A stretch of DNA of 64,000 bases, taken from positions 186,001 to 250,000 of the forward strand of contig CBFFRQ010000032.1 of assembly GCA_965644315.1 (NCBI GenBank), written 5' to 3'. The notes under the pieces were generated by a model. It saw only the letters and a program-made list of their open reading frames with translations. It was not told the origin of the DNA and did no database searches. This DNA is from Caecitellus pseudoparvulus (lineage: Eukaryota; Protista; Bigyra: Bicosoecida). A program made the translations under genes and the position numbers. This document shows positions 53,194 to 61,743 of the stretch, in pieces; position 1 is the stretch's first letter, and each line of letters opens with the position of its first letter.

Positions 53194-54388
53194 TCACACC
53201 TTCCATAACTTGGCCACCGTCATGCCAGCCGGAAGCTGCTCCATGGCCAGGCCGAGGCCCTCATCGAACACCAGCGGCCGGTCGGGCTCCGCTGAAGCTG
53301 CGGCCAGGTATGCCGCAAAGGAATCCGTCGTCTCCTCGCCTTCAATGATTTCAACATCTTCGGTCACCCGGCTCACTGTTCGGGCTGCCAAGGGTGCAGG
53401 CTGGTTCTCGATCGTGTACTTGACACCAAACACAGGCCGAGCGGCAAACGTCGTGTGCATGGCTTGCACCGCTCGAAACACTTCAGTCAACTTCTCCTCG
53501 GGCTCAACCTTGAAGCCCAGCGTGTAGTTCCCGCTGCGAGGTGTGGTGGTCAGCACCAGCGCCTTGCCGAAACGGCTCTCCCGCAAGCCAATGCCTGTCA
53601 TCTGCAGGTACGGTATGGAGACGTTGAAGTTCTCGGCCAAGTCGGCATGCCACACCATGCGGATGTTGGTGATAAACAGCGTGCCAAGGTTCCCCTGCTC
53701 AGCGGAGAGGTTCATCACGCCCCCCTGCTGCAGGTACACCTCCTCGTCGGGCAGGTGAATGAGGGCGCCGTCCTTGATGATAGCACCACGAAGGCGCAGG
53801 TCGCGGAACAGCTTGGACGTCTCGTACGCCCGGAAGACTGCCTGCACGGTCGTGAACATGCGCGGCGACGCCTTGACCAGGGAGGTGAAGATGAACTCGT
53901 ACCGCTTCTTGCCCATGCGGGTCATGAGGAAGAGTGCCTGTGTGCGGCCACCCCGCAGGCGGCTGTCTGTTGTGCGAATGGTGATGGTCTGAATCGTGCT
54001 GTATCCAATGCCTGTGTGGACGAGGGAGGCATCGTGCTCAGTAGCGTCGCAAGACACGCCAGGCCAGCATGCAGACTGTGCGCCAGACCCACTCAGATTC
54101 ACACGGTCACTCCGATGCGACGTCCACATGATGCGCAGGTTGGTCATGCACAAGCTTCCACGCATTCCATTGTTTCCTTTCGTGTCCTCCACGCTGTTAA
54201 TACGGTCAATCACTTCCTCCCCTGGGCGTGGTCGAAGGAACCTGGGCAAAGGGCGTTACAGTGTGAAACGCGCGCCACTCGGCGTTGCCGCGCCCCCACG
54301 CCCCCACGCACTTGGGGTGCACATCAAAACGAAGTTCGAATGGTTGCCACCAGTCGCCCCCCGCGATGCTGCTGCTATCAGCAGCCAT
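53194..54388 (-). CDS. BBS5: Bardet-Biedl syndrome 5 protein (BBSome subunit); first intron 54242-54311, plus a second in-frame intron after VNLS
   Basis: ELRFD|...RPGEEVIDRINSVEDTKGNNG, YEFIFT, RAYETSKLFRDLRLRGAII, NLSAEQGNLGTLFITNIR, NFNVSIPYLQM, SRFGKALV, LGLAMEQLP. Confidence 0.96.
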
Positions 54389-54692
54389 TAGATTCGATCG
54401 TCAGCCGTGCAAACGTCAACGAGTGCGCTCTCCCTGACTGGAATCCGCCTGCCCGGATGCTCCTCCTCCTAAGTGCCCACAGCGTCGGATCGACTTCCCT
54501 GAACGTTACACGCACGCTCATAGCCTGCTTTGTGTCATCCATTTGGAGTGTAAATTGGCAGCGAGGATCTCAGGGGTGTCCGGATCTGCCCCCCTCGGGT
54601 GTCCGGGAACTGGCCCTGGGACACTCCTTGCACCCCCTTTCAGGGCCTCAATAAATGACACCCTCTGGTCCATGCTAGCGCTTCGTAGGTAA

Positions 54693-55253
54693 AACATATC
54701 ATTTTTTTCATTCTCAGAGGGTCAGGGAAGTTCGGGAGGATTCCCTGCTCGTGGGTGGCGTGGAGGTGGTGGCACGGATGTGGTCCGCACTGTGCAGGCG
54801 GCAGAGCACGCGGCCAGCGACCCCCGCCTGGCCGACGCTCCATCCTGGTCGGAACAAGGCCAGCAGGCAGCCGCTGCAGCGGAGGCAGGCGCCTTGGCAT
54901 CGGAGGTCATGGGGGTGGTGCTGGCTGCCATGGGTGCAGATGTGTTCCTGACGGCGTACAACGGTGAGCGGCGGACCAGGGCGGTAGCGAAAGAGCGGCG
55001 GGCGAAACAGGTGGCGCAGGAGGTGGTGGTGAACCCGGCAGCAGCAGCTGCAGGGTGTCGGATCCGGAAGGCACAGGCGAAGAAGCGCCACGTGGCGAAA
55101 CGCATGGACAAGCTGAAGGTGCTGCGAGGCGGTGGTGGGAAGTGCAGGAAGCGTGCGAGGGAGGAGTCAGAGGAGTTGGTGTGTGCAGGTGTGAGAATGC
55201 AATGCAGGTGTGGGAGCGGGAGATGTGGGGATGGTGGTGAGGTGTGTTGTTGA
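54693..55253 (+). pseudogene. UTP20: 5'-truncated fragment resembling the extreme C-terminus of UTP20 (SSU processome)
   Basis: LASEVMGVVLAAMGADVFLTAYN...KERRAKQVAQEVVVNPAAAA...RIRKAQAKK matches my recollection of the UTP20 tail pattern LxxE+xxxxxxxxGxxxFxxA(Y/F)...RxKxxAxExVxNPxxAA. An in-frame stop at 54690 precedes it and there is no suitable upstream start. Confidence 0.65.
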
Positions 55254-55363
55254 GTTGCGTGTGGTGGATTGAAGTGTGTACTGGCCTAAAGTGGGTGTCA
55301 GGTCTGCCACATGTTGCATTGGACTGTGCGTGAAGCCAGAGATCAACTCAAGTCTGTCAAGCT

Positions 55364-57628
55364 CTAAAACGTGGGAGCTTGCCGCCGCACGTTGTCTGGG
55401 ATCCTTCGGTGTCCAGTGAGGCCCAGCAGCTCACGCACGATGCCTGTGTGGCCTTTCAAGCATGCCCATCGGAAGGCGGCCTCAGGTCCACCCCTATCCA
55501 CCGCATGCACATCCACTTCTCGAGCTCCAGAGAGGCCCAGCAGCTCACTAACGATGTCTATGTGGCCATTGGCGCATGCTTCTCGGAAGGCAGCCTCAGG
55601 TCCAACCTCATCCGCTGCATGCACATCCACTTCCCGCGCCCTAGTCAGGGCGAGAAGCCCACGCACGATGTCTGTGCGGCCATAGCGGCATGCGGTGCGG
55701 AAGGCGGCCTCAGGTCCGTTCCTATCCGCCGCATGCACATCCACTGCCTCATCACCCGTCAATGCAAGCAGCTCACGTACTCGCTCAAGTTTGCCTTCAC
55801 TGCACGCTTCTACAAAAGCAGTCGTATTCTCCTCACTGAACTTTACTTGCCCAGGGGCGTGCCCTGCCTGCACCTGAGCTGCCGCAGCAGCTGCCTGCTC
55901 TCGATCAAGCACACTCCGCACAGCACTCTCCACATCTGACAGGCGCCACACTCCACCCCCGCTTCTTTCACACGCCATCGCGTATGCACCCATGCAGCTA
56001 CCACTCCCTCCCCGCCCCAACACCTCCAATGTGCTCGACAGGGCATGCTCACCACCTTCACCGCTGCCCACGAAAAGTGACCCAACGCCCGATCCGCCAC
56101 CCAAGGCCCCACCTCCCACTCCAAGCACCCCGTGCAGCACACCCAGCACACCATCACCAGCACCGCCGCCACCATCAGCCTGGCGTGTGCCCCACACACG
56201 GCCACATGCACTCAACACCACCTCACACCCACCCCCATCCAGTGCCGCCACCAGATCACCCACACTGCCACTCTCCACACCCACCACCACAAAGCTCCCC
56301 ACACCCACACCATTCAGACTCACTCCACACGCCTCCGCCACAGCACACACACCCAGCACCCTTACAGCCACGCGATGCTTCACATCCAGCCCAACATCGT
56401 CCCACGCTTCATCCTCCAGGAACACCCTCAGCGGCCACCCCGCCTCACACTGCACCTGCACTGTGGCACTGCTCCTCTCACCACTTGGCTCATCAGCTCG
56501 GCCACCAATGACTCCATGTGCGAGTGCTGCCTTGTGTGGAGTCTGCGCCATCCGTGGAAGTCCTTGGGCGATGCGAGTCGCTTCGCCACGCTTCACGGCG
56601 CCAACACTAGTTGCAAGCGCTGTCGCACCCGCATCCACACTCCCTGCCCACTCTTCCACATCCTCAGCTCTATCGATATCTTCATCCACGATCTCACTCC
56701 GTCCACTGTACACACTCACATCCTTGCCGTTCAGGCACTCAAAGCCGCCCGACAAGTCCAAGCCACGCACAGCCTTCACCTTCCGACCACTCATGACCGG
56801 CGCACACCCCAGCAGCCCCCGCAGCTCCTCCACCGCACTCGCTGCACTCTCCAGGTGCTCCGCAGCACTCTCACTCCTCAGATCGCCTGCTGCCTCGCCT
56901 CGCAGCCACTCAGCCTGCTGACGCATGCCGGCTAGAGCCGCCTCCGTCGCTGCTTCGCCACCGGCATCATGTGTGACTGGGCCACCCTCACCAGCCACAC
57001 CTGCCTCCGCCCTCTCGAAGCCCTGCCACCATCGTGTCAGATCAGCCAGCGCACCCTCTACATCCACACCGCTCCGAACACTGCTCCAAGCACCCACGAT
57101 GGCGCCCCACAGTGCGTCACCCTCCGGCACTGCATCAACACTCACGCCAGATACCGCCTGGTGCAGCACATCCACCGCGGCGAAGCACCGGAACGACAGG
57201 TACTGCAGCGCAGCACACACATCACCTCGCTCACGCTGCCCCGCCAACAACGCAGCTTGCTCCAACAGCGCACCCCCCGCGTCACGCAGTGCAGCCTCCA
57301 GCTCCACCAGGCTCATGGCCGATGGGGCGTCATCACCTGCAGCATGCACTTCGCCACGCCCAATGGCTGCCAGTCCTCGCAGTGCAGGGCCGTGTGCCAT
57401 GAAGCTGCCCGGCAAGCACTTCATCTTGCCCAAGCATGCCGCCACCCCCTCAGCCTGTGTGACGTCGATGCCTGCAGTGGGAGCTGCACTGTCGTCCATG
57501 GATTGCCCTGTGGCTGCTGCCTGTGGTGTGGGGGAGGGACAGGGCGTTGTGTGCTGTGTGGTGTGAGCGACACGCTCTGGCGCAAGTGCTTGCGAAAGCG
57601 GAGCGCCGTGTCCACGCCAACGCACCAT
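55364..57628 (-). CDS. Transposon cargo gene: helical N-domain, probable pseudokinase and 4 ankyrin repeats; predicted introns 57521-57625 (right after the ATG) and 57683-57788 (5' UTR)
   Basis: Intact 2.2-kb ORF; ankyrin units EAAFRxACxxGxxxIVxxLLxL; kinase-like spacing PLRVFLE...KHRVAVRVLGVCAVAEACGVSLNGVGVGSFVV and MACER...RLSDVESAVRSVL. Both introns end CACACCACAG. Confidence 0.75.
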   Translation of the reverse strand: MVRWRGHGAPLSQALAPERVAHTTQHTTPCPSPTPQAAATGQSMDDSAAPTAGIDVTQAEGVAACLGKMKCLPGSFMAHGPALRGLAAIGRGEVHAAGDDAPSAMSLVELEAALRDAGGALLEQAALLAGQRERGDVCAALQYLSFRCFAAVDVLHQAVSGVSVDAVPEGDALWGAIVGAWSSVRSGVDVEGALADLTRWWQGFERAEAGVAGEGGPVTHDAGGEAATEAALAGMRQQAEWLRGEAAGDLRSESAAEHLESAASAVEELRGLLGCAPVMSGRKVKAVRGLDLSGGFECLNGKDVSVYSGRSEIVDEDIDRAEDVEEWAGSVDAGATALATSVGAVKRGEATRIAQGLPRMAQTPHKAALAHGVIGGRADEPSGERSSATVQVQCEAGWPLRVFLEDEAWDDVGLDVKHRVAVRVLGVCAVAEACGVSLNGVGVGSFVVVGVESGSVGDLVAALDGGGCEVVLSACGRVWGTRQADGGGGAGDGVLGVLHGVLGVGGGALGGGSGVGSLFVGSGEGGEHALSSTLEVLGRGGSGSCMGAYAMACERSGGGVWRLSDVESAVRSVLDREQAAAAAAQVQAGHAPGQVKFSEENTTAFVEACSEGKLERVRELLALTGDEAVDVHAADRNGPEAAFRTACRYGRTDIVRGLLALTRAREVDVHAADEVGPEAAFREACANGHIDIVSELLGLSGAREVDVHAVDRGGPEAAFRWACLKGHTGIVRELLGLTGHRRIPDNVRRQAPTF
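55400..55830 (-). repeat. 114-bp (38-aa) ankyrin tandem repeat with high internal DNA identity
   Basis: GCATGCACATCCAC recurs at 55503, 55617 and 55731; CGGAAGGC(G/A)GCCTCAGGTCC recurs with the same period. Confidence 0.9.
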
Positions 57629-58046
57629 GGCGATGGGTGACAGGGGGTCTGATCAGGCGTGGCAGTGCTGTGAAACTAGCTCCTGTGGTGTGGGTACAGT
57701 GGGCAAGTGTGCTAGGTGTGGCGGGGAGGCGTTGTCGTAGTTCACGTGCGAGGGTGCAACTTCCGCACTTGCACCAGTACGTCCTCACCTGTGGCGGCCA
57801 GGAGTGCTGAAAAAGCCCCAGGCACACTGGTGGGCGCACATGCAGTGACAGCACAGGTGTGTGTGGGAATACGTTGAGGTGTAAATTGGTGGAAGGCATT
57901 TCAAAGGTGTCCGGCTATGCTCGACCGAGTGTCTGGCATCTCAGCAAAAATGCGGAAAGAGCTTGCAGGACACCCCTGAGATCCCTGATTGGCAGGCACA
58001 GATCTCTGCACAGAGCCAGCTGGCTCAGTTCGAATGCTCAACAGTA

Positions 58047-61000
58047 TCAAAACCACTCCTCAGTGCCATCCAAGTCACCTGACTCCTCAACAGCGCCACT
58101 CTGCGCAGTCAAGCGTCCACCTGCGCTGCTCCCCTTTGACTTCTCCAGCGCTTGGATGCCCCCGCCTCCAGAGCCAACAGACAGGCCAGAAATGGCGCCA
58201 GTCCGTGCGGGCGCTGTCGGCGTCGCCTTCTCCGGTTGGCCAAGCTTGCCTTGTGGGCTCAGTTCACTGGAAGCCTGCTTGATCGCATGCCTGGAAATAA
58301 CGGGCTGGTCGTCTTCGTCGGAGTCACTCCACCCCTCGTCGCCATAGTCGCTGTCCGTGTCACTGCCACCACCCGCCCCCTTGCCCCCTCCAAAGCTAGG
58401 AGCAGAGCCAACAACTGGCGAGAGAGCTGCCTTAGCCTGCGCATCGGCTGCACTGCCTTCCATGGCCCCATGCGACGTTGAGCTCGCCATCCAGCTTGGC
58501 TTGTAGGCGCCTGATTCCTCTGCCGCCGGGCTTCCTGCACCCGGGGCCTCCAAGCTTGCCTCCTGCATCCACGATGGCACATCAGCTGCTGGTGCTGCTG
58601 CTGGTGCTGGTGCTGCTGCTGGTGCTGGTGCTGGCGACGGTGCACTTGCCTCCTGCATCCACAATGGCACATCAGCTGCTGGTGCTGGTGCTGGTGCTGG
58701 TGCTGGTGCTGGTGCTGGTGCTGGCGACGGTGCACTTGCCTCCTGCATCCACAATGGCACATCAGCTGCTGGTGCTGGTGCTGGTGCTGGTGCTGGTGCT
58801 GGTGCTGGTGCTGGCGACGGTGCACTTGCCTCCTGCATCCACAATGGCACATCAGCTGCTGGTGCTGGTGCTGGTGCTGGTGCTGGTGCTGGTGCTGGCG
58901 ACGGTGCACTTGCCTCCTGCATCCACAATGGCACATCAGCTGCTGCTGCTGACGCTGGTGCTGGTGCTGGTGCACTTGCCTCCTGCATCCACGATGGCAC
59001 ATCAGCTGCTGCTGCTGGTGCTGGTGCTGGTGCTGGTGCTGGTGCTGGTGCTGGCGACGGTGCACTTGCCTCCTGCATCCACAATGGCACATCAGCTGCT
59101 GGTGCTGGTGCTGGTGCTGGCGCTGGTGCTGGTGCTGGCGACGGTGCACTTGCCTCCTGCATCCACAATGGCACATCAGCTGCTGGTGCTGGTGCTGGCG
59201 CTGGCGACGGTGCTGGTGCTGGCGCTGGCGACGGTGCTGGTGCTGGCGCTGGCGACGGTGCACTTGCCTCTTGCATCCACGATGGCACATCAGCTGCTGG
59301 TGCTGGTGCTGGTGCTGGTGCTGGCGCTGGCGACGGTGCACTTGCCTCCTGCATCCACAATGGCACATCAGCTGCTGGTGCTGGTGCTGGTGCTGGCGAC
59401 GGTGCACTTGCCTCCTGCATCCACGATGGCACATCAGCTGCTGGTGCTGGTGCTGGTGCTGGCGACGGTGCACTTGCCTCCTGCATCCACGATGGCACAT
59501 CAGCTGCTGGTGCTGGAGCTGGAGCTGGTGCTGGTGCTGGTGCTGGCAACGGTGTAGAAGCCACCTGGCTGTCAGAACCAGAGGCTTGAGCACTGTCTTC
59601 GAAGTCGCTGTCTGCATATTCGTCGAAGCCATCATCCGAGTACCCTGCATCTGTGTCGGGTGATGGTGCACGCTGCGGCTTGGCAATGTGTTGGGTGGGT
59701 GCAGGAGAAGGCGAGGGCGCAGGTGATGCGCTTGCTACACTGGGCACTTTAACGTGGCTTTCTGGTCCAGTGCTTGTATCAACATGAACAGGGTCCGGCT
59801 CAGGCGAGAGGGCTTGCTGTGGGCGGGTGGCGGATTGGGTCGCAGAGGACGCTTGGAAGCCAGAGGTGCTGCGTGCATGCTTGCTGCTCGAAGATTGGCG
59901 CATAGTGTGTGCAGGGGCTGCTTGCTGGGCTGCGCTGCGACCTCCGCCCGCCTTGCGTGGCTGTGCGAAGCCGGGAGACGCGAAGGGTGCTCCAGCCCCG
60001 CCGCCTGCGACCTTGGCGCCAGCCCGTGCGATGCTCGAGGCGGAGCGGTGGTGGGATGCGCGACTCTGAATCGTGTCTTTCTGTCGCTGAGGTGGCTGTC
60101 GCTTTGGTGACGGGGACTCGCGCGCGGGTGCGGGGGATGGCGATGGCACAGCACTGGGCAGCGGTGGGTGTGTCCGTTGGTACGTGCCGCTCTCCTTGGC
60201 GCGTGTGAGGTACGCAGGAAGGGGGGACGCCTTGAAAGGTTTTGAGGACTGCTGTGTTGGGCGAGTGCGGCACCTGGAGCTAGCCCTGCCCTTGGACCTC
60301 CCGCGGCGTCCGCTAGCCTGGCGATCCTGCACTGCCAAATCAGCCTCGTGCTTCATCGCCAGGTGGGCCCGCTGCCGCAGCGACCGTGCGCGGTCCCTGG
60401 CCCTGGGCCTGGACATGGCTTCAACTGTGCTGCGCTGGCGGGCGGCCCGGGCTGCGGCCTGGGCGCGGGCTACTTCATCTGCCGGCCCAGACTTGCGGCT
60501 GGCAGTGGTTCGCACACCGCCCCAGAGCGCGCCATACGTGCCCTTGACGCTCGCCTTGAGAGAGCGGCCGCCTAGGTTCGCCTTGGCTCGCTTGCGCTGG
60601 GCTGGGGAGAGGTCTGCCGTGTAGATCCCAGCTGTGCGGCGGGTGGCAGTGCGGCCCGCCCTGGCTCGCAGTGGCGACATGGCGTCTCCGCCAGCGCCAG
60701 CGGGGTCGACGACCGGGTCCCCCCTGCCCTCTCCTCGGCCAGATCCTGAGCCAGAGTCGCCTGGCTGGGGCAGGCCAACCGCTTCCGCCACCTGTGCGAT
60801 GAAGTCCTTGTTGGTGACGTACCCGTCATGGCCGCGCGGAGGGGGGCTGCGACCTGCACCCCCCCCCTCGCCTGCACGTAGGTGGGCTGGGCGCCTGCTG
60901 CGCCTGTTGGAGTGCTTGGCTCCTGCTGTGGATGCCATGGAACGAAGAACGCCTCGTGCTCCGCGCTGCCTTGTCGCCAGCACGTCGGCCACGCTAGGAC

Positions 61001-61743
61001 TCTCGGAGCGGGGCTGCCTGAGCCTGGGGCGCCGCTTGCGGGAGACGTCCACCAGGGGCTTGCTCTTGGGAGAGTCTCCTGTCGGTGAGGGGGGCGATGC
61101 GTCCACCAAGGCAGGAGCTGCCTCGTCCCCGCCGTCCACGACAGGCGCGTAGCCAGACACGCCAGCCGGCAGGGGGCCTCTACCGCTCATCGCCGCCTCC
61201 TCTCCCAGGGAAGCCATCATACCTGAGGCAGTACTGGTAGGTGACATCATGTGTGGCCCCGCACCGTGCCGGCGTCGTTGGCGGTGCTTCTGGCGAGGCA
61301 TACGCGTCGCTGTGATGTGCGGCCTCCTGCGCACTGGGTCGCTGTGCGACGCAGCTTGCTGTGCTCCACCGTCCCTGCCTGATGCAGCAGTCGCTGCCTG
61401 CATGGCATCAAGCTGGGCTTGCAGTTCTTCCACAGTCAAATCTTCCAGGGCCGACGGCTCGGTCAAATCAAGCACGGCCTGGGCGTGGCCCTCCACAGAC
61501 CTGTGAGGAAGAAAAACCGAAGCTGTTGGCAACTGCTTGTGCAGGGGCAGGAGCGCCTTCTGCGACAAGCCTGGTGTCGCAAGCAAGTGGACAACGTAGG
61601 CGTTAGCACTGCCACAGTACTGCAGCCAGCACTGCGGCACTCTGCCGCGTGTGACCTGGCACACAGAGCCGAACCACACAGCCCAACTGGCCGGCAACAT
61701 GCGTGACACCTCAACGCAGGCGCGCGCACCTTGCAGAACTCAT
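58047..61743 (-). CDS. Disordered Pro/Ala/Arg-rich protein with a Trp-motif repeat array; predicted intron 61501-61729
   Basis: ATG 61743 (MSSAR|SVEGHAQ) splices in frame into the long ORF. Contains KPFKASPLP, 12 ADVP(S/L)WMQEA repeats and an acidic tail ending EEWF. Confidence 0.7.
58553..59550 (-). repeat. Coding minisatellite: 12 copies of ADVP(S/L)WMQEAS separated by variable (PA)n hexamer runs
   Basis: + strand unit CTTGCCTCCTGCATCCAC(A/G)ATGGCACATCAGCTGCT followed by (GGTGCT)n. Confidence 0.95.

Follow-up and report, generated by a model that had tools for sequence, protein, structure and literature searches.

We found that a 3,426-bp non-autonomous hAT element in the protist Caecitellus pseudoparvulus carries host DNA copied from one chromosomal segment, and in all likelihood it is one member of a multicopy Pack-hAT family. 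The element occupies positions 54562-57987 of the window, by which we mean the whole stretch of 64,000 nucleotides that was analysed (C32:240562-243987 in contig coordinates). It combines a CAGGG-like start of the terminal inverted repeat (TIR), mutated at the left tip, with an 8-bp target site duplication (TSD) and ends common to a hAT-transposase element; as in Pack-TIRs, the host donor lacks transposon ends and no transposase lies inside. Its features and those of the flanks are listed in Table 1.

Table 1 Features of the element and its flanks in the window
Feature	Position	Strand	Remark
Flanking host gene BBS5	53194..54388	-	PF07289
Left part of the 220-bp host intergenic interval	54392..54561	.	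51% identity to the empty allele; right part 57996-58045
Left TSD copy, 8 bp ATTGGCAG	54554..54561	+	empty allele L060 has one copy, diverged
hAT left end: TIR with CGA tip and subterminal repeats	54562..54742	+	70-88% identity to left ends of C68/C99/C96
Captured UTP20 3' fragment, truncated	54743..55230	+	PF23099, E 0.0036
Intact 754-aa cargo ORF: helical domain, kinase-like fold without catalytic motifs, linker, 38-aa ankyrin repeats	55364..57628	-	
Ankyrin array, 114-bp units	55394..55840	-	Pfam ankyrin; each unit has five positions that are hypervariable in the family
Kinase-like part, residues ~271-480	56189..56818	-	model pLDDT 85.6
Upstream region of the cargo gene, common to the donor	57629..57850	-	C43 copies match to 57850, then stop
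95-bp mini-hAT forming the right end, contains the right TIR	57893..57987	+	
Right TSD copy, 8 bp ATTGGCAG	57988..57995	+	
Flanking 1,220-aa host gene	58047..61709	-	silent divergence from the empty allele falls away from the insertion

An earlier note on this DNA had described 20-bp TIRs with a perfect inner 17 bp, an exact 8-bp TSD and subterminal motifs, all of which were confirmed: the TIRs lie at 54562-54581 and 57968-57987, and the motifs at 54575, 54598, 54620, 54657 and 57906. Even when 3 mismatches are allowed, the window has two matches to the TIR 17-mer (0.19 expected), and the whole genome contains 35 matches at ≤2 mismatches, compared with 1 for a control. A Pfam search of the interior detected no transposase and returned only ankyrin and a weak UTP20_C match, in agreement with the host-type, transposase-free interior that had been reported. 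Relative to the transposase, the left end of the element is its 3' end and bears a 48-bp subterminal deletion compared with a cognate element. The right end is a 95-bp mini-hAT in which ~35 bp of left-end type are joined, at a common 11-bp motif, to the last 60-64 bp of a right end. Its first 35 bp match the left tip at 23/35 positions versus 13/35 for the native right-end position, and through this structure the left tip recurs inside the element as a direct repeat.

The two TIR tips differ, reading CGA on the left versus CAG on the right. Because other wild alleles of this insertion have CAA at the left tip, CAG>CAA>CGA would be the simplest path. Immobilisation of this copy by the tip change, as raised earlier, is plausible from the sequence, and the 48-bp subterminal deletion could matter as much.

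We identified several transposase-bearing relatives of the element. Two 2.1-kb elements, C68 and C99, are 93% identical, have perfect 22-bp TIRs and retain a remnant of a PF05699 transposase. Three 4.14-kb elements (C3:20880-25018, C84:59523-63661 and C89:392759-396898) match the window element at both ends and encode 1,062-codon frames with PF05699 domains of identical scores. The suggested search for an autonomous hAT with the same TIR thus gave candidates that match at the ends, whereas the TIR itself departs from that of the window element after the first 7 bases; judging from their frames and ends, the 4.14-kb elements are likely to be the helpers. Since the transposase reads from right to left, the right end of the window element corresponds to the 5' end of the hAT, and the cargo gene has the orientation that a transposase gene would have. 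The 4.14-kb elements were analysed by coordinates, as were the C43 donor described below and the left flanks of the copies on C62, C92 and C144. Among the relatives, the TSD matches at 7/8 positions at C68 and at 8/8 at C96. The C96 element spans 25.3 kb (C96:25631-50917; L009, L010); hAT homology breaks at L009:2457 and the sequence turns AT-rich ~80 bp further on, and therefore ~23 kb are nested inside. Elsewhere, C89:63448-71007 holds two inverted hAT copies, with right ends facing outward and sharing 8 identical outer bases and left ends facing each other ~2.7 kb apart, and a tandem pair of hAT right ends lies beside an ankyrin copy at L006:1301-1562 (C66).

The origin of the cargo could be traced to a locus on C43. 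The UTP20 fragment, which in the window has an internal deletion of ~230 bp after 54772, matches C43:618894-619368 at 86%, inside a 4,210-codon UTP20 frame; the captured piece is 91% identical to that frame at the protein level, and the frame includes the sole UTP20 N-terminal domain in the genome. Convergent ankyrin genes lie directly beyond UTP20 on C43, where no hAT end is present, and the similarity to the element stops at window position 57850, before the hAT end. Because the UTP20–ankyrin junction exists at C43 without a hAT end, the cargo is one contiguous copied segment whose donor remains intact. With cognate transposase elements, a donor locus and an empty site all found, the classification as a non-autonomous hAT with captured host DNA is upheld. 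The view of the element as a gene-shuffling vehicle stands in so far as captured host genes are carried, but every cargo-bearing copy examined contains the same block, namely the 3' end of UTP20 with the ankyrin gene convergent to it; the element therefore amplifies a single gene and does not shuffle a variety of them. Two related loci were noted. In the common spacer of the main arrays (L032:4096-4770), the UTP20 fragment is fused to a piece of another host gene whose frame is broken. At L052:10001-12511, housekeeping genes surround a distant homolog of the cargo protein (~50% identity); as this homolog has no hAT end, the gene family is older than the capture.

A genome search placed cargo matches at no fewer than 38 loci (at least 38, with 79-85% identity), and metagenome read depth over the cargo is ~15-40x that of the single-copy flank. 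In most copies examined, similarity stops at a decayed right TIR tip, beyond which nine unrelated flanks were seen, with a tenth in a metagenome. The proposed search for TIR pairs with differing TSDs recovered five two-ended copies (window, C62:75930-81849, C67, C92:16502-21419 and C144:2988-8231) with distinct right flanks. Their TSDs gave a mixed answer: the match is 8/8 at the window and 6/8 at C67 (p ~0.006), and a test that tolerated 2 mismatches across TSD and TIR tip detected none at C62 and C92. In C62, C92 and C144, a fixed position in UTP20 lies at the same distance of 654-655 bp from the left tip, suggesting a single founding capture; the copies in the window and at C67 are shorter derivatives. 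Taken together, multicopy transposition is well supported, with TSDs shown at two copies. Many copies stand in head-to-tail arrays with a common spacer (C21, C22, C79, C142 and C196), indicating that tandem duplication made much of the family; since most copies are in arrays or lack a left end, transposition accounts for only part of the expansion. In the C72 array, the left-tip repeat continues into a full left end and then into UTP20, a structure as would arise from unequal recombination between left-tip repeats. In the C32 array, the outer flank (L036:1-1500) resembles a dihydrouridine synthase gene by its motifs, and the first 280 bp of L036 are duplicated in the array spacer.

We propose that a hAT acquired the chromosomal segment once, perhaps by template switching or through two hAT ends bracketing it. 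The founder would have begun with a left end of ~240 bp, followed by ~1.7 kb of UTP20 and by the ankyrin gene together with the DNA upstream of it, and would have had the 95-bp mini-hAT at its right end. Transposase supplied in trans may have moved this founder to several loci, after which arrays would have been built by tandem duplication and by recombination between the two left-end repeats. Selection would have kept the ankyrin gene open as the UTP20 piece and the TIRs decayed. The window copy would then be a deletion derivative that inserted upstream of BBS5, is probably immobile now and is polymorphic between strains.

The copies might instead have arisen by gap filling without transposition of the cargo: ordinary hATs would have inserted first, leaving the TSDs, and their interiors would later have been replaced by cargo through ectopic recombination or repair on the common ends. 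The family tree is star-like, as expected under conversion, but such replacement is at odds with the right ends of the cargo copies, which have changes in common that are specific to the cargo family and do not show the states found in resident hATs. Likewise, the internal direct repeat created by the mini-hAT offers a substrate, and the C72 array shows recombination between such repeats, yet no cargo-free 95-bp mini element occurred among 40 scored candidates. Although this route has been described for single-copy Pack-TIRs (PMC8277862), we regard it as unlikely here and favor the multicopy Pack-hAT.

Besides the truncated UTP20 fragment, the element carries an intact gene as its main cargo, and purifying selection acts on it. 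The frame is open in all 20 genomic copies examined and in one metagenome copy (21/21; 695-1,265 codons) at ~15% pairwise divergence, with the 20 copies chosen as best DNA matches, a choice that favors intact ones; a rough neutral expectation of an open frame is <2% per copy. dN/dS is 0.30-0.45, and two alleles of the window copy differ by 51 silent and 42 replacement codon changes with no stop. These patterns, read from sequence comparison, argue for purifying selection on the cargo gene, while the UTP20 pieces decay, several of them containing stops and frame breaks. If the cargo were passive filler made of pseudogene fragments, and the element a selfish relic without host benefit, the truncated UTP20 part and the stops and frame breaks in several copies would be explained, but the open frames, the dN/dS (from best-match copies, favoring intact ones) and the stop-free allelic changes would not, and we consider this very improbable.

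The cargo protein is predicted to comprise a helical domain followed by a kinase-like fold (structure model pLDDT 85.6). All 50 top VIA-align rows for the kinase-like part are kinase-domain structures, the best being chain B of the mouse RIP3-MLKL complex (Z 9.2, rmsd 3.5, 151 aligned). Thus, the protein resembles MLKL-type proteins in its predicted helical region preceding a kinase-like fold without catalytic motifs, with MLKL at or near the top. It differs in that the Foldseek match to MLKL reaches only E 0.028, many kinases tie and the cargo adds C-terminal ankyrin arrays. The kinase-like fold scores Z 7-9, and neither an HRD nor a DFG motif is visible in the family alignment. The helical domain gave no alignment to the MLKL four-helix bundle, and its single-domain model has a pLDDT of 50. 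Across the ankyrin repeat family, 5/38 positions are hypervariable and the repeat-motif count ranges from 2 to 14 per copy. The exact 754-aa protein has no database record, and an Atlas feature search gave no match. From its architecture, the protein may have a sensor or defense role. The transposon route explains the spread of part of the host's hypervariable ankyrin family.

We then compared the family with known systems. In plant Pack-hATs, the cargo consists mostly of gene fragments; here a single intact gene is carried, and selection on it is purifying. Non-autonomous hAT ends, the 8-bp TSD and captured coding DNA from a contiguous segment are features that the present element has in common with plant Pack-hATs and other Pack-TYPE elements (PMC8903248). 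Pack elements, described earlier as documented mostly in plants, are indeed known there but have also been reported from frogs (PMC8277862) and fungi (ToxhAT, PMC9594970). Multicopy Pack-TIRs in animals include Ssk-FB4 of Drosophila and Pack-hAT-N8_XT of Xenopus (PMC8277862), which likewise hold host sequence between TIR ends and have a transposon-free parent locus and several dispersed copies; Ssk-FB4 carries nearly a whole gene. Copy numbers of these elements are 3-5, and in the frog a 291-bp stretch of UTR serves as cargo, in contrast to the at least 38 copies, 2-3.8-kb frame, variable repeat number and tandem arrays of the protist family. ToxhAT of wheat-pathogenic fungi is similarly bounded by hAT ends and moves an intact host-type gene between loci (PMC9594970), but it is 14 kb long, single copy per genome and horizontally transferred, with no expansion of a repertoire. 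A limited literature search found no report of a Pack-TIR from a protist. The family differs from these closest cases in its host group, its size and its intact hypervariable cargo. With a donor, a likely helper element, dispersed copies, arrays and an empty allele, it can be traced in full how a DNA transposon built up a large set of genes that are intact and diversifying.

Finally, we analyzed the insertion site, a 220-bp interval bounded by the stop of the 1,220-aa gene and by the BBS5 start. The best named relatives of BBS5 include oomycetes and Platysulcus, which together with the marine origin of the reads points to a marine protist, probably a stramenopile, as host. Independent metagenome contigs from marine samples cross the left junction (X5, X8 and X13) and the right junction (X5 and X8), and the left junction is also present in L055-L059. 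In three of the metagenomes with the filled allele, the tip is CAA and the left target copy varies; the insertion is thus of sufficient age for diversification to have occurred. A spliced BBS5 contig, L054, has a filled-type leader and extends to 54511, 50 bp from the element, indicating that BBS5 is still transcribed. The empty allele sought by the earlier note was found in L060, which is colinear and measures 221 bp against the 220 predicted, with one target copy recognizable at only 6/8 positions in this strongly diverged allele. L060 was deposited as Symbiodinium sp. KB8 (GCA_905221625.1); as its flank is 98% identical to the locus of this protist, it most likely represents a contaminating strain of the protist in that assembly. 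In addition, a coverage gap in run X12 starts at the same place as the insertion, which suggests the same empty allele. An assembly artefact or a chance TIR/TSD is refuted by the junction-spanning contigs of independent studies, the genome-wide TIR family and the empty allele; the data thus contradict each of the circumstances held to count against the element, namely no other TIR copy, no empty site or an artefact at the junctions.

Filled and empty intervals are 51% identical, with an alignment score of 94 versus a maximum of 75 in 1,000 shuffles, and the two alleles are therefore clearly homologous. Silent divergence between them is 0.31 beside the insertion and 0.07 further off (p 3e-9), and introns differ by 2%. 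This pattern fits an old presence/absence dimorphism, as seen with one empty sequence. Divergence peaks at indels can arise without selection (PMC5127803). The indel-associated nucleotide dimorphism of Arabidopsis similarly shows a divergence peak at a presence/absence junction (PMC5127803), but the peak here is ~49% within the 220-bp interval. A further idea is that the hAT spread a repertoire of immune receptors of an MLKL-like pseudokinase-ankyrin type, with balancing selection maintaining single insertions such as this one as ancient presence/absence polymorphisms, as for plant R genes; we consider it doubtful. The natural pair of filled and empty strains could serve to test a defense role of the cargo proteins, for example against viruses.

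Two minor observations concern the flanks. The left flank (54543-54561) resembles the 19 bp before the mini-hAT (57874-57892) at 15/19 positions (p ~1e-4, uncorrected). hAT targets are biased toward T at positions 2 (15/21) and 3 (13/21) and G at position 6 (13/21), with a preference for G at position 4 as well; this preference accounts for part of the likeness, and the rest exceeds it. We rejected both a flank brought in with the element and a birthplace of the family at this site, because the flank aligns colinearly with the empty allele, and because the resemblance to the flank is weaker in the family consensus than in this copy. Within the 1,220-aa gene, window positions 58555-59470 hold a Pro-Ala repeat array with Trp motifs, of which the empty-allele strain has far fewer units.
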